DNA of 16,044 bases, taken from sequence record MK054224.1; one strand, 5' to 3'. Position 1 is the first letter of the stretch. Every line of letters starts with the position of its first letter. This document shows positions 259 through 16,044 of this stretch, one piece after another. The translations under genes were made by a program, and so were the position numbers. The notes beneath the pieces were generated by a model that saw only the letters and a program-made list of their open reading frames with translations, ran no database searches and was not told where the DNA came from.

Positions 259-360
259 CTCATTCTAATAGAACGATCAGCGTGGAGTTGAAAGAAGACG
301 GCAAAGATTCCTCACTTTTGCGAAAAACTGAATATGTGATACTTAGCAACTGTGAGGCTT

Positions 361-746
361 TGGAAAATTTGTAATTGTATAACTGCTCACTAATTTATAC
401 AAGAGATACCCCTGTTTTGGGGGTATATCTAGAATAAATTAGTGAGGGTTGAGAAATTTTCATATTTTCCCGGCGGTCACTAATTTTTAGTAGCAACTGC
501 CAAAAAAAGAGGTGTAGTTTAAACTTTTGTAGACCGGGTTTAAAGTACACCTACTCCAGAAAAATTTGCTACTAAAAATTAGTGAGCACTTAGACAATTA
601 CAAATTTTCCAAGTGGTCACTGTTTTTTACTAGCAACTCTCAAAAAATGAGGTGTGTCTAGAATAAATTAGTGAGCGTTTAGAAAAATTATACATGTTTT
701 TGGGGTACACCTATGCCAGAAAAAATTTTTAGAACAAATTAGTGAG
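361..746. repeat. Iteron and inverted-repeat block, putative replication origin
   Basis: AAATTAGTGAG at 436-446, 576-586, 665-675, 736-746 (+) and 386-396 (-), one-mismatch copy 476-486 (-); exact 20-bp inverted repeat 477-496/566-585; 34/36 inverted repeat 361-396/576-611; exact 19-bp direct repeat 428-446/657-675. Repeats are directly seen, origin function is inferred. Confidence 0.75.
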
Positions 747-759
747 AGGTGGAACAAAT

Positions 760-1065
760 TCAAAAACTAAACTTCTTTTTAATCTTTAGTAGACTATCTA
801 AATGTTTTAGCTCCAATTCGCTGACCTGTAACACTTGACCGTCTTTAAGTCTCACAATGTAATAGACTTTACCCTTCTCATCTCTCTGCCATCCAATGAT
901 TTCGTAACTGTTGTCTGGTTCAATGTATCTAAAAATTGGAGGTTCTACAGTCCTATCAATATAAAGAAACACCAAACGTAAACATTCTTTAGCCTTTTCT
1001 ATCGTTTTCTCGTCAGCTACTAACCCGTCAAATTCTTTACAAGAATTCCACATACTCTTCACCAT
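760..1065 (-). CDS. Hypothetical protein (97-101 aa), last gene of leftward operon
   Basis: ORF overlaps the 3' end of the helicase-like gene; GGTGA SD favours the ATG at 1053. Confidence 0.75.
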   Translation of the reverse strand: MVKSMWNSCKEFDGLVADEKTIEKAKECLRLVFLYIDRTVEPPIFRYIEPDNSYEIIGWQRDEKGKVYYIVRLKDGQVLQVSELELKHLDSLLKIKKKFSF

Positions 1066-2638
1066 CTGTCATTTTATGGTTTACTAAGCCCCTTTCTTCG
1101 GCCCATTTTAGTACTTTTTCTGCAATCTCCTCACCGAGTATGCCATAAAATTCGCTGATCGTGAACTGCTTCCCCTTTAACTCTTTGTAAATTTCTGCCA
1201 TGTTACCCGCAAACGTCAAATCGCCGTTACCATCCCTCTCTTCTTTATAACCGTTCACGACAAGGTCTATGACCTTTTGCCCGAACTCGTTACGCCTCCA
1301 TTTATTCCTATTCGCTTTGTCCTTGTCAAGGTCTACCAGCCCTTTACGTGATAGGTTGTAGAGCCATGCCTTTGCTGTCTCTGTATCGACCTTGAGTCTC
1401 ATTGCTATAGTCTTCGTTTCTTCGAATTCGGTACTGGTAGCCTGTAACGCTTTCAGTTCGACACTCGTTAGCCCTACCGCTGATACTAGGAAGTACCTCA
1501 ATAGCTTTTGTGAGAAAAGTGAGTAAACTTCATCATCAACTACTTCTTTCCCTAACAACGATGCAAATATCTTCATAACTTTTAGGCCTTGGTCGTAAAC
1601 TCTAAACGCGTACTGGTTATACTCCGTAATGACGTCCTTGAACCTCATTGCGATTTCTTTCGGCAGTTTAACACTCCTCGGTGTATAGTACATCCATGCG
1701 ATAGCCAGGTATTTTGTCACGGGGTCATACTCAAACGCGTTATCACCCCTTTCCGCTATCTTCTCGTATATCTTTTCCACGTCTCCTCGTTCCAGGTCTA
1801 GGGCAACAGTCAGGAAACGACTCATTATCTGTGTCACTTGGTCATTGCTATAATCAATGTTTACCGCAGTAGAAACGACACTAGGCGGGTAATCTACTAT
1901 ACCGTAACTGCTTCCTAACTTATCATCTGTACTTTTTGCGGTTAAATTGGCCAGTCTACCTTCAGTCATCAGCATGCTTAACTCCTTTAACGCCTCGACG
2001 TCAATCGTTTCGACTATAAAGAGACAGCGGTTCTTCAGTAGTTTACCGTTCTCGTCGAAAGCCAGGTAGCTAAGTGCTTTTTTTGTTAAGTTTGAAACCC
2101 ACAGTACAGCTCCATATCCTTCTTTTAGACTAAACATATTGACGATACTCTTCACTGCTGAAGATTTTCCCGCTCCTGCACTCCCTAGCACAAGAACACC
2201 GATTTTAGGTAGACCTTCATAAAATGCCGATTTTATTGCTATCAACGTCAGTAGTTTTACCTCGTCGTCACCAACGTGCCATTTTTCAGATTGCCTTAAG
2301 AACCAACCGATAGGGTCTTTTCTTAATTCTTCCCACTGCTCCGGGAACTCTGTCATTACCCATTCCTGTAAAGGTTTCTCAACCGTATTTTCCGCTAACA
2401 CTTGCCTGACAAACTCGTTGAACTTCTCCTTTTCCCTTTTTATTGATGTACATTCGCTACTACGTTTAAACGTTCCTTCCGTTATAGGATATGTCACTTC
2501 TTTCCCGTCTTTGATATACCTGTAACTCGGTACAATGTATACTATGCCGTCGTCAATCGTTGCGTAAGTGTTTTCATCATCTATCTCTACTTCGATTTCA
2601 GCGTTTACACATTCACTATCATATGAATACCTCCTCAT
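1037..2638 (-). CDS. MCM-like AAA+ ATPase, putative replicative helicase with C-terminal winged-helix domains (533 aa)
   Basis: Walker A GSAGAGKS (2185-2162), Walker B-like LFIVE, sensor-1-like VVSTAVN, Arg finger IMSRF, sensor-2-like FRVY; C-terminal wHTH-like segments (TIAMRLKVDTETAKAWLYNLSRKGLV; AEKVLKWAEERGLV). Confidence 0.75.
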   Translation of the reverse strand: MRRYSYDSECVNAEIEVEIDDENTYATIDDGIVYIVPSYRYIKDGKEVTYPITEGTFKRSSECTSIKREKEKFNEFVRQVLAENTVEKPLQEWVMTEFPEQWEELRKDPIGWFLRQSEKWHVGDDEVKLLTLIAIKSAFYEGLPKIGVLVLGSAGAGKSSAVKSIVNMFSLKEGYGAVLWVSNLTKKALSYLAFDENGKLLKNRCLFIVETIDVEALKELSMLMTEGRLANLTAKSTDDKLGSSYGIVDYPPSVVSTAVNIDYSNDQVTQIMSRFLTVALDLERGDVEKIYEKIAERGDNAFEYDPVTKYLAIAWMYYTPRSVKLPKEIAMRFKDVITEYNQYAFRVYDQGLKVMKIFASLLGKEVVDDEVYSLFSQKLLRYFLVSAVGLTSVELKALQATSTEFEETKTIAMRLKVDTETAKAWLYNLSRKGLVDLDKDKANRNKWRRNEFGQKVIDLVVNGYKEERDGNGDLTFAGNMAEIYKELKGKQFTISEFYGILGEEIAEKVLKWAEERGLVNHKMTDGEEYVEFL

Positions 2639-3073
2639 TTATATCGCCCCGGCGTTCATTATGATAACGTCCTTTCTTAAGAATAATTCCTCGAAGCTAA
2701 GCCTAACGATTGGTTTAGACATGTCTGTTTCTCCTATAGTCCTATAATTCGTCAAATCGGAATATAGTACCTTTATTTTGTTAACGCATATTATGTCAGT
2801 GGTTTTCCCCGAATAAGAATTGTAAATCTTCAACTCATCGTTCTCTTTAATTAATTTGAATTCGTGATGATCGCAAACTTGCAATATTGCGTAAGCTTTA
2901 GGAGGTGAACCTCTCAGTGATACGAATATCGTAGAATAAAGGCCGTTATAGTCTTTCATAAACGCAATTATCATTTTCCTGATTTCGATATTTTCCTCAT
3001 AACACCTTAAATCATGTCCGCAGTAGGCTGAAGCCAATAAATGTTTAACGTAATCCCAACCGTTCTTAGTCAT
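2639..3073 (-). CDS. Hypothetical protein (144 aa)
   Basis: ATG at 3073 overlaps the upstream TGA (ATGA) with GAGGCG SD; its stop abuts the helicase-like ATG. Confidence 0.8.
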   Translation of the reverse strand: MTKNGWDYVKHLLASAYCGHDLRCYEENIEIRKMIIAFMKDYNGLYSTIFVSLRGSPPKAYAILQVCDHHEFKLIKENDELKIYNSYSGKTTDIICVNKIKVLYSDLTNYRTIGETDMSKPIVRLSFEELFLRKDVIIMNAGAI

Positions 3074-3489
3074 TTGCATCGCCTCAACTCGATAACCGGC
3101 TTTTCGAAAAGTATGCGTTCACAATTAGCTTTTTCAAAACTAAGACCTAGTTCCTCTAACCTCTTTTCTATTTCTTCAACATTTTCCTTTAACGTTAATC
3201 TCCTTTTACCTTCTATGTCACATAACGGGCAATTCGCATTAAAGCACCACTTAGCATCTGAACATGTTGCAGAAGTACCGTCGTCAAGAGCCGGTTGAAT
3301 GACAACATCGTTAACAATTAAAGGTGTTAAGGGGTCGTCGTTGATAAACGCTATACCTTTTCCGTAAGTACAATATCCTAAACTATACTTCCTATTTTCA
3401 AATCTCAGGACATTAACATACCATATTACTTTATGGTGGTATTTTTCTGGGTGTTCGAGTAAGTCCTTAATGTATTCTTTGACGTTCAT
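3070..3489 (-). CDS. Hypothetical Cys-rich, putative Zn-binding protein (139 aa)
   Basis: C-x5-C-x4-C-x2-C (CSDAKWCFNANCPLC); tight operon packing. Confidence 0.8.
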   Translation of the reverse strand: MNVKEYIKDLLEHPEKYHHKVIWYVNVLRFENRKYSLGYCTYGKGIAFINDDPLTPLIVNDVVIQPALDDGTSATCSDAKWCFNANCPLCDIEGKRRLTLKENVEEIEKRLEELGLSFEKANCERILFEKPVIELRRCK

Positions 3490-3492
3490 CGT

Positions 3493-4011
3493 TTACCCCT
3501 TTAGTTTCGGCTTAGCCTGTGTTACTTTTTTCGCTTCATTCTTTTCCTGTTCTACTCTTTCTTCCGTTTCCTCTTCCCTTTCTTCGTCTTCTGTTTCTTC
3601 ACCTAGCACTAGTATCTCGTCGTAGAACGTCTTGTTCTGCTTCTTACTCACTTTGATTTTTAGTTTGGTACCCTCGGTGATTTCTTTACTCTCCCATGCG
3701 TCGTATAACACCTCATATGCTTTAGACGTCAACTTCATTATAGCTTTGTCTCCTAGTTCACTCGCATCATACTTCTTTGGTTTTACAACTTCATCACCGT
3801 CTTCCGTCTTCGTAACGACTTTCTCCGTGACGCTCTCAAACTTTCCGCTTACCGGCTTTACGATAATACTGTAGTCTTCAATCTTCTTCACTGTACCGTC
3901 TTTCAACGCTATTTCTCTCTCAACGGCCTTTGGTGATTGCAACACTTCTACGGTTACTTCGTCGAACGGCTTAACGATTGGTAACCTTTCCCTTTTCATT
4001 AATACTTTCAT
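3493..4011 (-). CDS. Probable SSV1 E178-like protein; possible OB-fold ssDNA-binding protein with acidic tail
   Basis: Beta-rich core followed by EETEDEEREEETEERVEQE tail; position next to F93-like and RHH genes as in SSV1. E178 similarity is from recall; SSB function is inference. Confidence 0.7.
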   Translation of the reverse strand: MKVLMKRERLPIVKPFDEVTVEVLQSPKAVEREIALKDGTVKKIEDYSIIVKPVSGKFESVTEKVVTKTEDGDEVVKPKKYDASELGDKAIMKLTSKAYEVLYDAWESKEITEGTKLKIKVSKKQNKTFYDEILVLGEETEDEEREEETEERVEQEKNEAKKVTQAKPKLKG

Positions 4012-4193
4012 GCGTTAACACCCTCCTTTAATACCTCTTGTCTCTTCTTGTCGATATACCCTCTGCTTAACGCTTCAATGATTAAGATCTCAATTGCATC
4101 TGTTAGAGTTAGCTTTTCTTGTTTAGCTAAAAAAACGAATTTTTCTTTAATTTCACGATCTAATTTTATTCCTACATACTCTCTCTCTTTCAT
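4008..4193 (-). CDS. Ribbon-helix-helix (CopG-like) regulator, 61 aa, possibly SSV1 E51-like
   Basis: YVGIKLDREIKEKFVFLAKQEKLTLTDAIEILIIEAL is an RHH pattern; ATG at 4193 lies 34 nt below a TATA box, so the track start at 4247 is probably too long. Confidence 0.8.
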   Translation of the reverse strand: MKEREYVGIKLDREIKEKFVFLAKQEKLTLTDAIEILIIEALSRGYIDKKRQEVLKEGVNA

Positions 4194-4205
4194 GGCCAAT
4201 TTATA

Positions 4206-4245
4206 TTTAAACAACAAAAGTATAAAAGTTTTTTGGTGTTTAAAC
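4206..4245 (-). promoter_or_regulatory. Leftward early (T5-like) promoter: TATA flanked by inverted operator half-sites
   Basis: TTTTATA on minus strand (4227-4221) between ATTTAAACAACAAA (4205-4218) and TTTGGTGTTTAAAC (4232-4245); 37/40 identical to the inverted 4740-4779. Confidence 0.75.
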
Positions 4246-4254
4246 ATAATTAGG

Positions 4255-4692
4255 CTAAGATTTCAAGAACCTTTGTAAATATTTCAAGTCGTCTATAATC
4301 CTCTTTTTAGCCTCTTCATCAAGTATCCCCAATCTTGTAAATATTTCAACATATGGAATCAAGATTGTCTGTCCCGCTAACGCCATTGCTATAAGTATCT
4401 TGTTAGGGTCTGCCTCTTTTTTCATTCGTTTATAGGTCTCAATACCCGGTTTCAGCGATATCGCGAAAAGTTTACCCTTTTCCGTGAGATATATCTTTTT
4501 TTCCCCTTTCTCTTGTTTCTCTTCTATAAAGCCTTCCTGAATAAGAAATTTCTTAGCGTCATAAAAAGTGGCGGTGGACATGGGGAAATCCGCGTTTACT
4601 TTCTTATATAAATCATATGTGGCTATCCCTTCATTATCATATATGTAGACTAATACTATCGCTTCAGGGTAGAAGAAAGGAGTACTTTTCAT
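4255..4692 (-). CDS. SSV1 F93-like winged-helix (MarR/PadR-like) regulator with C-terminal extension (145 aa)
   Basis: MKSTPFFYPEAIVL...MSTATFYDAKKFLIQEG...YLTEKGK closely matches recalled SSV1 F93; TATTTAAA (4722-4715) lies 30 nt upstream of the ATG at 4692. Confidence 0.88.
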   Translation of the reverse strand: MKSTPFFYPEAIVLVYIYDNEGIATYDLYKKVNADFPMSTATFYDAKKFLIQEGFIEEKQEKGEKKIYLTEKGKLFAISLKPGIETYKRMKKEADPNKILIAMALAGQTILIPYVEIFTRLGILDEEAKKRIIDDLKYLQRFLKS

Positions 4693-4713
4693 ATATCGCA
4701 TATATAATTTATA

Positions 4714-4780
4714 GTTTAAATACCAAACGTTTTAGTGTTGTTTAAATACCAAAAAGTTTTTATACTTTTGTTGTTTAAAC
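4714..4780 (+). promoter_or_regulatory. Rightward early (T6-like) promoter with three operator copies
   Basis: GTTTAAATACCAAA at 4714-4727 and 4740-4753, inverted TTTGTTGTTTAAAC at 4767-4780, TTTTATA at 4758-4764. Confidence 0.75.
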
Positions 4781-4800
4781 AATAGATAGAGGGTCAAAAA

Positions 4801-5109
4801 ATGGTTGAACCCCAATACCAGGAAAAAGTTTTGGGTGAAGTTAGTTTGAATTTTTTTATTCGTTCCGTAGAGGTTGAGGGAAGACATAACTTCTACTTCA
4901 AACTATACGTGAGAATAAAAGATGATAAGAATGGAACTGAAATCGATCAGCAGTTTCTAAGTCCAGAAGAGTATGAAACCCACCGCATTTTGAAAGACAT
5001 CGAGAAATTGTATAATTTAGCCCGCTTTTCGCAAAATGAAAAATTGGCACAAGGGGCGAAAGAAGAGATTCTAAAATTAATTGCGTTACTGCTTTCGCGT
5101 GTAAGTTGA
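4801..5109 (+). CDS. SSV1 A100-like protein (102 aa)
   Basis: First gene of the rightward early operon; C-terminal KEEILKLIALLL resembles the A100 family. Confidence 0.7.
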   Translation: MVEPQYQEKVLGEVSLNFFIRSVEVEGRHNFYFKLYVRIKDDKNGTEIDQQFLSPEEYETHRILKDIEKLYNLARFSQNEKLAQGAKEEILKLIALLLSRVS

Positions 5110-5904: not shown

Positions 5905-6207
5905 ATGATGATTTATGATATACTATTATATTATGGGTTTCAGTTCAATGACTATTGGACAACAATATTAGGTACCAAAGTTGGCGGAAGAGAAGCAAAT
6001 CTAGTAGCGAGGTTGTTTATGAAAAACAGATTAACATTAGCTATCTATAAATTTGATCTCGCTACAGTGGCTCTATTATTAGCTTTCATGTTAGATAACG
6101 TAAAAATGATACAAACGTTCCTACTTATTGTTGATGTTGTTGAATGCCTTGTAACACTAAACAATACTCTTACGATATATAGGCGTAAGAAGGTGAGAGC
6201 AAAATGA
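5905..6207 (+). CDS. Hypothetical protein (100 aa), positional SSV1 C102a-like
   Basis: AAGGTG SD before the ATG at 5905; the track start at 5830 overlaps the upstream gene and is unlikely. Family assignment is mainly from gene order. Confidence 0.65.
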   Translation: MMIYDILLYYGFQFNDYWTTILGTKVGGREANLVARLFMKNRLTLAIYKFDLATVALLLAFMLDNVKMIQTFLLIVDVVECLVTLNNTLTIYRRKKVRAK

Positions 6208-6383
6208 GGAAATTATGGGTGGTTTCAGCAAAAGACCCTTACGGTGATATTGTTTATCTGAAAATAACGCCTAAAAAGTCTACTGCGAAACGGTATTTGA
6301 AAGAGTGCAAAGAGATTTTCAATAGTTGTGAAATGGTACTTGGTGAGTTCTACACTCTCGATGAGGCTGAGGGGAAAATATAA
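6204..6383 (+). CDS. Hypothetical protein (59 aa), absent from ORF track
   Basis: MRKLWVVSAKDPYGDIVYLKITPKKSTAKRYLKECKEIFNSCEMVLGEFYTLDEAEGKI; ATGA overlap upstream, TAATG overlap downstream. Confidence 0.8.
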   Translation: MRKLWVVSAKDPYGDIVYLKITPKKSTAKRYLKECKEIFNSCEMVLGEFYTLDEAEGKI

Positions 6384-6754
6384 TGTCAGGTAATAAAAAT
6401 TACCTGAGTAATCGTAAAACTTTAGGGATTCATGTGTCTGCAGAAGAACTAAAACGGTACCACTCTTTATCTGCAGAACAGAAAAGGTTGTTAAGGATAA
6501 TCGTTAAGGTGCTTATTTATAACCCTGAATTGCTTAACGAAAGTTCTTATCTTTACAAATTACTCACCACAAAAGCTATATCGCCTTACGTTTGCCCCCT
6601 TTGCTTAATACCGTTTTCCTCTTCCGTTAGTCTGAAACAACACATTAGATATGCTGAACATACGACAACTTGCCCGGTGTGCGGTAAGGAGTTTGCAAAG
6701 ACTGACGCACTCTTAGACCATGTTTGCAAAAAACATAATATCTGCGTTAGTTAG
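6383..6754 (+). CDS. SSV1 B129-like tandem C2H2 zinc-finger DNA-binding protein (123 aa)
   Basis: CPLC...HIRYAEH and CPVC...HVCKKH; usual position at the end of the early operon. Confidence 0.9.
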   Translation: MSGNKNYLSNRKTLGIHVSAEELKRYHSLSAEQKRLLRIIVKVLIYNPELLNESSYLYKLLTTKAISPYVCPLCLIPFSSSVSLKQHIRYAEHTTTCPVCGKEFAKTDALLDHVCKKHNICVS

Positions 6755-7096
6755 GTGATGTTGATGAATAGGCTAAAGGTCTTATGGTTCATCTTCATTT
6801 TAGGTAATATTTATGATGTCGTAATATCGGCAATAGCGTGGAGGTATGGGGCTATGGAAATAAATCAAACTTTAATTGATTTAGGCTTATGGTATGGTAA
6901 CACATCATTTTTTTCAGTAATGGAAGCATTTGTTGGCGTCAAATTAATACTAATAGTTGGAGTTTATTGGTTACTAAAATTATTCGAAAAACTTGGAGTT
7001 AGTAAGTATGAATGGTTGGGATTGGCCCCATTCGCCATTGAAACAATTTTTGTTTTAATATATGATACTTATAATTTCGTAATGCATCTTTTTTAG
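6755..7096 (+). CDS. Multi-pass membrane protein (110-113 aa)
   Basis: About three hydrophobic segments; NIYD...GAMEINQ resembles the DUF5658-type motif (recall); GGTGA SD favours the ATG at 6764. Confidence 0.8.
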   Translation: MMLMNRLKVLWFIFILGNIYDVVISAIAWRYGAMEINQTLIDLGLWYGNTSFFSVMEAFVGVKLILIVGVYWLLKLFEKLGVSKYEWLGLAPFAIETIFVLIYDTYNFVMHLF

Positions 7097-7109
7097 GCCC
7101 TTTATAAAG
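7094..7109 (+). promoter_or_regulatory. Conserved promoter TAGGCCCTTTATAAAG (T3-like)
   Basis: TTTATAAA starts 32 nt before the ATG at 7133; identical 16-mers at 8292 and 12343. Confidence 0.85.
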
Positions 7110-7132
7110 TCTACCTTCTTTTTTCGCTTACA

Positions 7133-8032
7133 ATGAGGAAGACCCTTCTAGCTCTTCTAACCCTATCCCTAGCGTTACTAATGTTAACAACACCTACCGG
7201 TGCTATAACTGCAAGTCAGTTAGGTGCAAATCAAATAGTATTTACGACTAATCAATTCTATATTGCCGGCGTTTCATATAGCAATGAGTGGTTTTCAGCC
7301 TTCTTCCATGGTTGGAACCCAATCGTATATGATGTTGAGGGTATCTATTTACGTAACATCTCTTTAGGGTACGTGAACAACCCTAATGGTAATGGCTATA
7401 ATGAAATATTTATAGGTATAGGGCTTAGTGCATATGCCACCGGGACTTTAGGAGGTGCCGGAACGCCGGGACAAATTATAAACAATGCAGTGTTGGCGGG
7501 CTTATATATTGTAACTACCAGTAGTGGATCCTATTATTATTATGTAGGCGCTGAAACATTACAAAATGGTAATCCTATAATTGCTAAAGATTCACCACCC
7601 ATAACCGGTTCTCTTCCAATAAGTGTGCAAACATATTTATATGATGATGGGAACGGAACTGCCACTGCGTATATAACATTATATTATTCATATGGTCTAC
7701 TGACATATAGTTTCTACGTCCCATATCCTTTTAATCCTAGTCAAGGATATGCCTCATATTCTGCACTCACTTTAATTGGTGCGATATTGCAATTACCATA
7801 TATTAGTGGAGGGCTAACGAGTTTCGATTTTACCTATCAAAGTAACGGGCAAAACTATGAATGGCCGAATCAGGTAGCCTCTGGTACTCAGATCATGGCA
7901 GGGGTTTATAACATATCAAGTTCCGTAAACGAGTTTACACAAGTAAGTCTGTATAACGGTTTCTTAAATAATGGTTTGTGGTCTTACATCTATAATTTTA
8001 CCTATCCATATCCTACCACACACGCACTCTAA
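7133..8032 (+). CDS. Secreted protein at the SSV1 A291 / SSV9 B310 locus, putative viral toxin (299 aa)
   Basis: Signal peptide MRKTLLALLTLSLALL like A291; Y/G/S/N/T-rich body; own promoter; located upstream of VP4. Confidence 0.7.
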   Translation: MRKTLLALLTLSLALLMLTTPTGAITASQLGANQIVFTTNQFYIAGVSYSNEWFSAFFHGWNPIVYDVEGIYLRNISLGYVNNPNGNGYNEIFIGIGLSAYATGTLGGAGTPGQIINNAVLAGLYIVTTSSGSYYYYVGAETLQNGNPIIAKDSPPITGSLPISVQTYLYDDGNGTATAYITLYYSYGLLTYSFYVPYPFNPSQGYASYSALTLIGAILQLPYISGGLTSFDFTYQSNGQNYEWPNQVASGTQIMAGVYNISSSVNEFTQVSLYNGFLNNGLWSYIYNFTYPYPTTHAL

Positions 8033-8038
8033 GGCAAA

Positions 8039-15193: not shown

Positions 15194-15265
15194 TAGGGGT
15201 ACCGGGGTTAAGGTACCCTATGGGGTACCGATGTACCCCCATGGGTGCCGGGTTCAGCCCGGCAC
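15194..15265. repeat. Three consecutive GC-rich hairpins built on GGTAC(C) motifs
   Basis: GGGTACC(15197-203)/GGTACCC(15212-218); GGGGTAC(15222-228)/GTACCCC(15233-239); GTGCCGGG(15245-252)/CCCGGCAC(15258-265), the last overlapping the int stop. Confidence 0.85.
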
Positions 15266-16044
15266 TTTGGACAGCCATTCCGCGTACTTCTTATACTCTT
15301 TTTTCGCTAAAGCGTATAAGTCCAAATAATGTTTTGTTAGCACGTCACTAGGTGTTCGTCCTTCTATGAAATCTATGACTTGACTTGGTATTTCCAATTC
15401 CGCCATTTTTGTTGCCACGAATTTGCGAAAATATTTAGGCGGGACTAAGTTCAACCTCCTTATCGCACTGGTAATCTGTCCTTCAGTTATCTTTATTTTC
15501 CGTAGAGGCGTGATGTGGAATAGGTAGAAACTCTTCTTTTGCCCCCTGACCCAATTGAGGACGTAAATACTAAAGCCGTCCTCATTAATTTCGTTTTTCT
15601 CGTCATAATTGCTTAGGACTTTAAGCACTTCTCTTTCTCTTCCGCCCGACTCTAAAAGTAGTCTGTAAAACGTGTATAACGCGTAGTTATCCCTTACCGC
15701 GTTGAGGGTCTTCCAGACTTCTTCTAATGTCGGCACGCGTAAGTCCGGTTTCGTCTTTTTCGGTTTCAGGTCTTTAGGCGGGTCTTTGTTCAGCACGAGT
15801 TTGTAGAAATTCCTCCACGCTTTGATGCAATTATTCGATTCTTTTCTTCCTTGCTTAACGCACGAGATATATTTCTTTATTGTCTCTTCACTGATATTCT
15901 TACTACGTAAAGCAATTTCGAATTTGAGTAAATCACTTGCGGAAATTTCAGAGTTGTTAGAAAGCGTTAGATTAGAGTCAATTATTCTAACTCCTTTCAA
16001 TTCATCATAATTAGCATTGGGGGTCTTAGGGGGTGTCCCCCCTA
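15254..16044 (-). CDS. int: Integrase C-terminal catalytic fragment, int(C), tyrosine recombinase
   Basis: LLLESGGRERE (Arg), KYFRK, EGR and KHY (Tyr) motifs; frame stays open from 16042 (GGTPPKTPNANYDELKGV) and joins int(N) through the att. Confidence 0.95.
   Translation of the reverse strand, partial: GGTPPKTPNANYDELKGVRIIDSNLTLSNNSEISASDLLKFEIALRSKNISEETIKKYISCVKQGRKESNNCIKAWRNFYKLVLNKDPPKDLKPKKTKPDLRVPTLEEVWKTLNAVRDNYALYTFYRLLLESGGREREVLKVLSNYDEKNEINEDGFSIYVLNWVRGQKKSFYLFHITPLRKIKITEGQITSAIRRLNLVPPKYFRKFVATKMAELEIPSQVIDFIEGRTPSDVLTKHYLDLYALAKKEYKKYAEWLSKVPG

Follow-up and report, generated by a model that had tools for sequence, protein, structure and literature searches.

What is the function of the compact block of leftward genes beside the integrase gene of MK054224, a Sulfolobus spindle-shaped virus (SSV) genome, and does this block move between viruses as a unit? 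The stretch of DNA analysed (the window; 16,044 bp) is identical to GenBank MK054224, the complete circular genome of SSV strain NL01B.C01.07 from Sulfolobus islandicus of Nymph Lake, Yellowstone, in which all genes are labelled 'hypothetical protein'. An earlier note, made from the sequence alone, had described six packed leftward genes and a repeat block, and had read them as a swappable, plasmid-derived replication cassette on an SSV backbone. Positions, order and junction sizes all agreed with that description. The products are, in this order, a ribbon-helix-helix (RHH) protein, a protein with a predicted oligonucleotide/oligosaccharide-binding (OB) fold that resembles single-stranded DNA-binding proteins (SSBs) (o172), a cysteine-rich protein (o139), the protein o146, a P-loop ATPase (o533, the candidate replication protein or Rep) and the product of a small open reading frame (ORF) (o101), followed by the repeat block. 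Our results suggest that the region ~340-4017 is probably an accessory, self-contained replication module, which occupies a slot between the F93/RHH regulators and the integrase.

That the block is swappable was apparent from the sister SSVs of Nymph Lake, whose backbones are 92-98% identical. In MK054234 and MK054223, positions 428-4017 of the window are inverted, and positions 1-298 and 4787 onward are collinear at 95-98% identity. The inverted block is headed by an RHH gene of the A58a type, and the F93-like/RHH segment of the window (4018-4786) has no match there. Over 4027-4812, two further viruses (MK054221 and SSV11) are 97% identical to the window, and then diverge. The slot of SSV11 contains two small ORFs, a distant Rep of 640 amino acids (aa) and an ORF of 110 aa, and the slot of MK054221 contains a MarR-like protein, three ORFs without assignment and a VirArc_Nuclease protein (D244-type), and no Rep. 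The latter is in line with the earlier proposal that the distal genes sit where SSV1 has the D244 nuclease. For this slot we thus observed three alternative contents and, for the cassette, two orientations, and the breakpoint (4017-4027) is common to the inverted, SSV11 and MK054221 arrangements. In an alignment of the junctions, the RHH genes are homologous and the swap point lies at their 3′ end, with the ATG of the OB gene immediately after it. The 5′ part of the integrase gene (1-226) forms the other border of the slot, and collinearity with the sister genomes ends near 298. Because the junction lies at the 3′ end of the RHH gene, the mobile unit extends over ~340/428-4017. F93 and RHH are therefore backbone genes in this virus, and the cassette consists of the OB gene, two small ORFs, Rep, the small ORF and the boxes of the repeat block. 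The RHH gene, which had been counted as part of the cassette, lies outside this unit. This Rep type (at least 93% identity) was found in 14 Yellowstone genomes of the MK0542xx series; as judged from genome comparisons and the match pattern, about nine of them have the orientation of the window and about five the inverted one. A single Rep subtype includes cassettes of both orientations. Goodman and Stedman (2018, PMC6080066) proposed that flanking repeats mediated an inversion or deletion of the 'T5+' block in ASV1, SSV7 and SSV9.

The large gene of the cassette, o533, encodes a β-rich N-terminal domain (residues ~1-85), an AAA+ core (~100-375) and two winged helices (388-462, MarR-like, and ~480-533). 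In the core we recognised Walker A (GSAGAGKS, with K158), a Walker B-like motif (FIVETID), a sensor-1 region (STAVN) and an SRF arginine finger (R274). K158 and R274 are kept in at least 90% of the family, in which the motifs follow the order pre-Walker-A helix (VGyE..K...L), Walker A (G.sGAGKS), Walker B-like (lFiEQID), LREmMTE, ITTsV and Q..SRF. A word search returned about 30 close relatives (69-94% identical), all with the precomputed Pfam assignment PF27228 ('MTBMA_p00010_2nd'). In addition, an exhaustive hidden Markov model search of 1.8 billion cluster representatives gave one small family of 34 proteins; many members are 600-860 aa long, with additional N-termini that are mostly of low complexity. 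The Pfam scan of o533 gave just weak P-loop and winged-helix matches, and PDB searches with the sequence and its profile gave P-loop and MarR-type matches only.

The family profile was then compared by hhalign to sets of 27 archaeal MCMs, 24 Orc1/Cdc6 and 10 MoxR proteins. The match to MCM (98.0%, P 1.8e-13, 328 columns) extends over the whole AAA+ core together with the lid and the winged helix at the C-terminus, and the motifs align one to one, with SRFL opposite the SRFDL of MCM. The values were 92.9% (P 3.7e-7) for MoxR and 58.8% for Orc1/Cdc6 (core alone 47.5%, over 29 columns around Walker A), and the control comparison of MCM to MoxR gave 96.9% (P 1.6e-10). Readings of the ATPase as Orc1/Cdc6 or as STAND were both weaker than MCM in these controlled profile comparisons. 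The best Foldseek matches of the AlphaFold2 (AF2) model were MCM2-7, SsoMCM and RuvB, and the first winged helix superposed on MarR/SarZ with Z 12.3 and a root-mean-square deviation of 1.5 Å over 74 residues. On profile evidence o533 falls into the AAA+ group of MCM and MoxR, with MCM as its nearest neighbour.

Several results speak against an unqualified MCM assignment. No match of o533 to the Pfam MCM family PF00493 was found, and its relatives stay below the cut-off (16-18 bits compared to 23.3, at model positions 21-97 only). The N-terminal domain of MCM (OB fold and zinc finger) is absent in o533, where only ~85 β-rich residues, the fold of which was not searched separately, precede the core, and the hhalign match begins at MCM column 308, behind that domain. 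With the cores alone the hhalign scores were 87.6 and 87.7, so that the o533 family is about as distant from MCM as MoxR is. The AF2 model has a predicted local distance difference test score (pLDDT) of 64 overall and of 30-50 in the poorly modelled AAA+ core, and its TM-scores to MCM are low (~0.27). Because the core was poorly predicted, the assignment rests mainly on hhalign. Moreover, because o533 is without the MCM N-terminal domain, lies below the Pfam cut-off and has a MoxR-like distance, we call it MCM-like and not MCM. What the earlier note termed 'helicase-like' is more exactly an MCM-like AAA+ protein with winged helices.

When plasmids were searched with o533 by tblastn, a single match was obtained, the 735-aa ORF735 of pSSVi (28.6% identity, 80% of the query, E 6e-14). 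Apart from the integrase, this 5.7-kb plasmid encodes no other large protein. The Prokaryotic Genome Annotation Pipeline (PGAP) labels ORF735 'MarR family transcriptional regulator'. The last 54 aa of o533 (window 1037-1200; L008 2387-2548) are 56% identical to ORF735, compared to ~28% for the remainder, and the C-terminus of o533 also looks far closer to the C-terminus of P0037, a plasmid-like protein, than does the remainder of o533. This suggests that the C-terminal domain (second winged helix) may have been exchanged between virus and plasmid versions of Rep. Homologues of Rep also lie 3′ of an RHH gene on small plasmid-like contigs or integrated elements. The proposal of a plasmid-derived replicon grafted onto an SSV is supported with respect to the plasmid kin (pSSVi ORF735 and the plasmid-like contigs), but a direction of transfer from plasmid to virus was not established. 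The comparison of GC content that had been suggested in this connection did not set the block apart as foreign (0.395 compared to 0.384), and neither GC nor GC at third codon positions gave a signal of foreign origin.

Among viruses, o533 corresponds to A460 plus C78 of SSV9 (84% identical), where the gene is split by a frameshift (SSV9 6100-7709), whereas the Rep of the window is intact. The SSV9 'DNA helicase' B494, considered as a counterpart of o533, was rejected: it is an XPD-like superfamily 2 (SF2) helicase without a homologue in the window. B494, ASV1 C559 and SSV7 A583 are all XPD/Rad3-like SF2 helicases (Pfam Helicase_C_2 at 1e-19 to 5e-22; ResIII, DEAD and DEAD_2), and such a gene lies directly before Rep in SSV9, ASV1, SSV7 and the provirus of Acidianus manzaensis. 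No DEAD_2 or Helicase_C_2 protein was found in the window by Pfam. Similarity of o533 to ASV1 C674, SSV7 B471 and the Rep of SSV11 is lower (25-27% identity, E 1e-6 to 5e-11). ASV1 C674 has been tied to the helicase domain of primase-polymerase (prim-pol) fusions of integrated elements, and a role of C674 in starting the replication of viral DNA has been suggested (Makarova et al. 2014, PMC4158269). Prim-pol or archaeo-eukaryotic primase families were found neither in o533 nor in its longer relatives or the other ORFs of the window. Likewise, a scan of every ORF of the genome at Pfam sensitivity detected no primase, prim-pol or polymerase family, as the earlier note had remarked of prim-pols.

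Some relatives of Rep stand outside this group. The Sulfolobales virus YNP1 (KP282679/NC_029027, 40.9 kb), which is not a fusellovirus, encodes at 31853-32896 the closest relative of Rep outside the SSVs (38% identity over 66% of the query); because of this protein, the Rep family extends beyond fuselloviruses and pSSVi-type plasmids. On an 83-kb metagenome host contig (L012, 297-3098), a Rep that is 81% identical to o533 lies between a gene for a 50-aa RHH protein and a ATTAGGAG block, followed by an N-terminal integrase fragment. No OB, o139 or o101 gene was called there; the contig begins 296 nt upstream, and the element may be cut. Another metagenome contig (L094, 4530-10627) carries a probable integrated element, in which an archaeal integrase and an RHH gene are accompanied by a Rep relative of 669 aa and by a fusion protein of 205 aa; the N-terminal part of this fusion is ASV1 B119-like and the C-terminal part o101-like. 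A search for related loci in genome contigs yielded none that was confirmed. In MK054232 (L004), Rep (1028-2629) is annotated as two coding sequences (CDSs; 1028-1816 and 1880-2629), although tblastn aligned it in one piece with 99.3% identity; this may reflect an in-frame stop or an annotation break.

The repeat block contains six ATTAGTGA boxes in both orientations (387-, 438+, 477-, 578+, 667+ and 738+), which may extend by a G and are embedded in nested direct and inverted repeats of 40-87 nt. All six exact boxes of the 16-kb genome fall within 387-745, compared to an expectation of 0.81 for the entire genome, and a count of six was reached in none of 200 shuffles. The block was observed to travel with Rep. 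Inverted cassettes keep it with Rep (L006 3385-3685; L007 12124-12424), and the ATTAGTGA cluster is located 3′ of the o101 homologue in both cassette orientations and in the A. manzaensis provirus, where the box block follows the Rep module at L011 11979-12168. In SSV9 and in the integrated element on L012, in contrast, the equivalent block after Rep is composed of ATTAGGAG boxes. The flanking words CCAAAAA.AGAGGTGT are common to blocks of both types. Clustered repeats beside a putative initiator gene, with a sequence that varies between relatives, are what is expected of iterons. The variation of the boxes between close relatives of Rep fits recognition by Rep, and we regard the repeat block as a candidate origin or Rep-binding array. 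Two small CDSs have been annotated that overlap the repeat block or border on it (234-374 and 395-550); their relatives are confined to near-identical genomes, and they are probably not real genes.

The second gene had been described as SSB-like. Its product, o172, is composed of a globular domain (residues ~12-137), an acidic disordered linker of variable length and a basic, conserved C-terminal tip (KPKLKG), and the conserved domain of the family measures ~135 aa. The AF2 model (pLDDT 82.8) shows an OB fold, with strands, one helix and two more strands, and then a disordered tail. The top rows of the VIA-align search were mostly proteins that bind single-stranded DNA: baculovirus LEF-3 (Z 5.9) and the SSBs of Coxiella and Escherichia coli (Z 5.4), with Rim1, PriB, PRD1 P12, T4/RB69 gp32 and RPA as further neighbours (overall Z 4-5.9). 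The best Foldseek match was also an SSB (E 0.012, probability 0.89). Both the model and the SSB-type structural neighbours therefore bear out the description. It has to be set against this that Z values of 5-6 for the OB fold are under the level that the tool requires for a specific match. By sequence, no known SSB family was matched in Pfam, NCBIfam or PDB, and phrog_21681 was the sole sequence-family match. Because the structural scores are middling, we consider o172 to be SSB-like, with predicted binding of single-stranded DNA, at moderate confidence. The protein is 83% identical to SSV9 C158 and homologous to ASV1 A171/SSV7 B204 (hhalign 95.4%, P 1.9e-8, 113 columns), and the OB protein is thus kept in the alpha- and betafusellovirus versions of the module. 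A kinship to SSV1 E178, as assumed before, was not found: neither tblastn nor blastp gave any similarity to E178 or to SSV1 in general, and o172 belongs to the SSV9 C158/ASV1 A171 family, that is, to the cassette and not to the backbone.

Less can be said about the small proteins of the cassette. Both in the A. manzaensis provirus (43% identity, E 2e-27) and on the 4.6-kb plasmid-like contig L093 (43%, E 1e-22), the gene next after Rep encodes a homologue of o101, and the C-terminal part of the fusion protein L094_205 is homologous as well; o101 has no Pfam family. It is a frequent partner of Rep. In SSV9, a frameshifted, unannotated homologue of o101 follows Rep at 7684-8033. Besides the window, MK054232 contains o146 (64% identity). 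MK054231, MK054234 and MK054223 are without o146, and in these genomes the o139 homologue abuts Rep. Except for a weak match to phrog_6988, o146 had no family match, and PDB sequence searches were negative. o139 sits in the place of the XPD-like helicase (plus a small ORF) of SSV9, ASV1 and SSV7. Five cysteines are invariant in o139 (C40, C76-x5-C82-x4-C87 and C123), and the protein possibly binds metal. The o139 family comprises 15 proteins among 5.8 billion, and there was no match in Pfam, PDB, NCBIfam or PADLOC; in general, the NCBIfam and PADLOC scans gave nothing significant. The o139 homologue of MK054232 is truncated to 92 aa.

The two regulator genes belong to the backbone. The earlier note had likened the first genes to the F93/E51/E178 neighbourhood of SSV1. 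This holds for the F93-like protein, which is 86% identical to SSV1 F-93 and has a C-terminal extension of ~50 aa, but, as for o172 and E178, no similarity between the RHH protein and E51 was detected by tblastn or blastp. The RHH ORF matched Pfam RHH_1 weakly (13.9 bits compared to a cut-off of 20.5, E 0.054), whereas its homologue ASV1 A58a (37-40% identity, E 1e-7 to 8e-8) passes with 23 bits against 20.5. All alignments with RHH homologues start at residues 19-24 of the annotated ORF. Because one arm of an inverted repeat (4206-4246) overlaps the first 18 codons, the ORF probably starts at 4193 and not at 4247, with Met19 as the probable true start; position 4193 is also the right edge that had been given for the operon. 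The inverted-repeat arms bracket the F93-like gene, with arm 4739-4779 upstream of it, and promoters or operators of the leftward transcript may lie within the pair. RNA libraries of cultures infected with SSV11 gave contigs of ~0.8-1 kb that cover the F93-like and RHH genes and continue into SSV11-specific sequence. This fits co-transcription of the two genes in SSV11, although contigs are no proof of a single transcript and some DNA may have been carried over.

The features are listed in Table 1. Along the operon, the RHH and o172 genes overlap by 4 nt (ATGA), o172 and o139 are separated by 3 nt, o139 and o146 overlap by 10 nt (4 nt with the GenBank start), o146 and o533 adjoin with a 0-nt gap, and o533 and o101 overlap by 29 nt (17 nt with the GenBank start).

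Table 1. Features of the leftward operon and its surroundings in the window (MK054224).
Feature	Position	Strand	Remarks
RHH ORF, CopG-like	4008-4247 annotated, probably 4008-4193	-	61 aa from Met19
o172, OB-fold, SSB-like	3493-4011	-	172 aa
o139, Cys-rich	3070-3489	-	GenBank start of the next gene, o146, is 3073
o146	2639-3079 (GenBank start 3073)	-	facultative cassette member
o533, Rep candidate	1037-2638	-	533 aa, MCM-like AAA+ ATPase with winged helices
o101, small ORF	760-1065 (GenBank start 1053)	-	97-101 aa
Repeat block, candidate origin or Rep-binding array	340-765		six ATTAGTGA(G) boxes, nested repeats
Inverted-repeat arms	4206-4246 and 4739-4779		41 nt, 93% complementary, TATA-like core
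F93-like winged-helix regulator	4255-4701	-	Pfam F-93_WHD, E 1.6e-29
SSV-type integrase	15254-16044 joined to 1-226 (5′ part 1-226)	-	spans the circle junction; Phage_integr_3, E 2.6e-44 (C-terminal part)

We compared this arrangement to known systems. The 'T5+' gene block of ASV1, SSV7 and SSV9/SSV-K1, reportedly described by Redder and colleagues in 2009, likewise occupies a slot beside the integrase, shows the order RHH, OB protein (A171/B204/C158), Rep (C674/B471/A460) and small ORF, and is a unit flanked by repeat blocks. It differs in that an XPD/Rad3-like helicase (B494/C559/A583) takes the place of o139 and o146, and that it reads rightward (plus strand) from its own RHH gene, whereas the block of the window reads leftward behind the F93-RHH genes of the backbone. 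The integrative plasmid pSSVi, a satellite of SSV1 and SSV2 in Sulfolobus solfataricus, also encodes an AAA+/winged-helix protein without prim-pol, with an RHH/CopG gene nearby and an SSV-type integrase adjoining. Unlike the window, it has no OB/SSB-like gene, no o139 or o146, no detectable o101 homologue, no ATTAGTGA array and no capsid genes, and its ORF735 has ~200 additional N-terminal residues compared to o533. ORF735 is said to have been assigned as the Rep of pSSVi from its sequence, by Wang and colleagues in 2007.

At the level of single proteins, o533 shares with MCM the order of motifs (helix, Walker A/B, HEAMEQQ-region block, sensor 1, SRF finger, sensor 2 and lid) and a C-terminal winged helix. 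It is unlike MCM in that an N-terminal OB/zinc finger is missing, the helix-2 insert region is shorter and a second winged helix is present. The RepA proteins of the pRN family (pRN1 ORF904, pSSVx ORF892) are, like o533 in its proposed role, plasmid or satellite replication proteins of Sulfolobales with a helicase and a winged helix and with a CopG-type RHH gene before them, and pRN-family elements spread inside SSV particles. However, RepA combines prim-pol with a superfamily-3 helicase, whereas o533 has neither and contains an MCM-like AAA+ core instead. With the SSBs E. coli SSB, T4 gp32, PRD1 P12 and baculovirus LEF-3, o172 has in common a single predicted OB fold, an acidic disordered tail and a short conserved tip. 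It differs from them in having no sequence similarity and in its tip, which is basic compared to the acidic-hydrophobic one of bacterial SSB.

If the region is a replication module, o533 would act as initiator and helicase. Its winged helices would recognise the ATTAGTGA boxes of the adjacent candidate origin, and the MCM-like AAA+ core, in which the Walker A lysine and the SRF finger are intact, would form a ring that opens or unwinds the DNA. The OB-fold protein with its acidic tail would then coat the exposed single strand. Since the virus does not encode a primase or polymerase, priming and synthesis would be left to the host, with PriSL primase, PolB and PCNA. o101 and the Cys-rich o139 may serve as accessory factors, and the upstream RHH and F93 regulators would set the expression of the module. 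Exchange among fuselloviruses, and probably with pSSVi-type plasmids, would take place by recombination at the 3′ end of the RHH gene and near the 5′ end of the integrase gene. In favour of a module, the six genes are tightly coupled, and Rep moves together with the boxes. Other points weigh against it. SSV1 and MK054221 replicate without the module, which is why we regard it as accessory and not as the replicon of the family. The XPD-like SF2 helicase of ASV1, SSV7 and SSV9 could point to repair or recombination and not to initiation. The RNA runs that we found came from SSV11-infected cultures, and their contigs match only positions 4027-4780 (F93-like and RHH genes) and not the cassette. 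A predicted complex of Rep and o101 scored 0.00 compared to a mark of 0.32, which says nothing for or against binding. Finally, box binding, helicase activity, binding of single-stranded DNA, origin function and use of the host primase are steps that we infer.

The same genes could serve regulation, incompatibility or a helper-satellite role, with the ATPase/winged-helix protein binding the boxes in transcription, copy number control or partitioning, or excluding or exploiting pSSVi-type satellites, which have a related protein and related boxes. The MarR/TrmB-like winged helix and the PGAP name 'MarR family' of ORF735 would suit a regulator, as would the fact that the module is dispensable for the family. 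In addition, pSSVi needs an SSV infection to multiply and spread (PMC8371274), which would agree with an interplay of satellite and virus, and the box sequence differs between close relatives of Rep, as it does for specificity or incompatibility determinants. However, an MCM-like ring ATPase with an arginine finger and an OB/SSB-like partner would be an unusual design for a regulator. Moreover, the Rep homologue is the sole large non-integrase product of pSSVi, and something must drive replication there. We consider a regulatory role unlikely. The differing boxes linked to Rep also suggest site-specific binding and not structure-specific repair, and we think it quite unlikely that motor and OB protein process intermediates in recombination, repair or replication restart, perhaps driving the inversions and swaps. 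Such a role would be consistent with the XPD/Rad3-like helicase directly before Rep in the three T5+ viruses and the A. manzaensis provirus, with the nuclease in the same slot of other SSVs and with the region being a recombination hot spot. Yet the window and pSSVi, which are without an XPD-like gene, keep Rep, and the window keeps the repeat block as well.

Variable slots of viruses often carry defence-type genes. With o533, both nSTAND NTPases and the winged-helix regions of CARF/Csa3 gave weak, sub-threshold matches, which could be taken for a STAND-like NTPase with a winged helix that senses or blocks competing elements or host immunity. These matches all remain sub-threshold and confined to the P-loop or the winged helix, whereas the MCM profile match is far stronger and no PADLOC family was significant, and a function in defence or counter-defence is very improbable to us. 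It is likewise hardly credible that there is no functional unit and that the genes are adjacent only through the tolerance of the slot for insertions. It is true that o146 is facultative, that o139 is limited to the Yellowstone type, that pSSVi-type elements are without the OB gene and that no o101-like gene was called on L012. However, alpha- and betafuselloviruses and the provirus share the order RHH, OB, (variable genes), Rep and small ORF, neither inversion nor divergence has separated Rep from the repeat block, and start and stop codons overlap along the entire block.

With a replication module as the preferred reading, part of the picture is already published, namely the gene block, its kinship with ASV1, SSV7 and SSV9, its possible inversion and the proposed replication role of the C674 family. 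New are the controlled MCM-like assignment of the ATPase, the OB/SSB-like partner that is conserved across genera, the variant without an XPD-like helicase that reads leftward behind F93-RHH, the population-level series of slot contents with a defined junction, and the differing boxes of close Rep relatives. Because the link to replication and the mobility of the block were already published in general form, the gain is a refinement and not a discovery.

Tentatively, it can be proposed that this clade carries a complete portable replicon, composed of a defined iteron origin, an initiator-helicase of the MCM-like type and an SSB of its own, which is traded between viruses and satellite plasmids and can be inserted in either orientation. 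To our knowledge, neither an origin nor an initiator has been demonstrated in SSV1, a virus studied since the 1980s. If the proposal is true, it would give fuselloviruses their first origin-initiator pair that is amenable to experiment. The candidate pair to examine is the 533-aa protein and the ATTAGTGA array, for which the ATTAGGAG boxes of SSV9 provide a natural second specificity and a built-in control. The Nymph Lake isolates come from one host population and have near-identical backbones, but differ in the block: it is forward or inverted, is present as another allele, or has given way to the nuclease set. They form a natural series that bears on the benefit of the module, be it in copy number, host range or the interplay with pSSVi-type satellites. 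In addition, the module could supply a small replicon for Sulfolobus vectors. The proposal, if true, would also provide a natural case in which viruses and satellites share and swap replication specificity, with the box sequence and the winged helix changing together.

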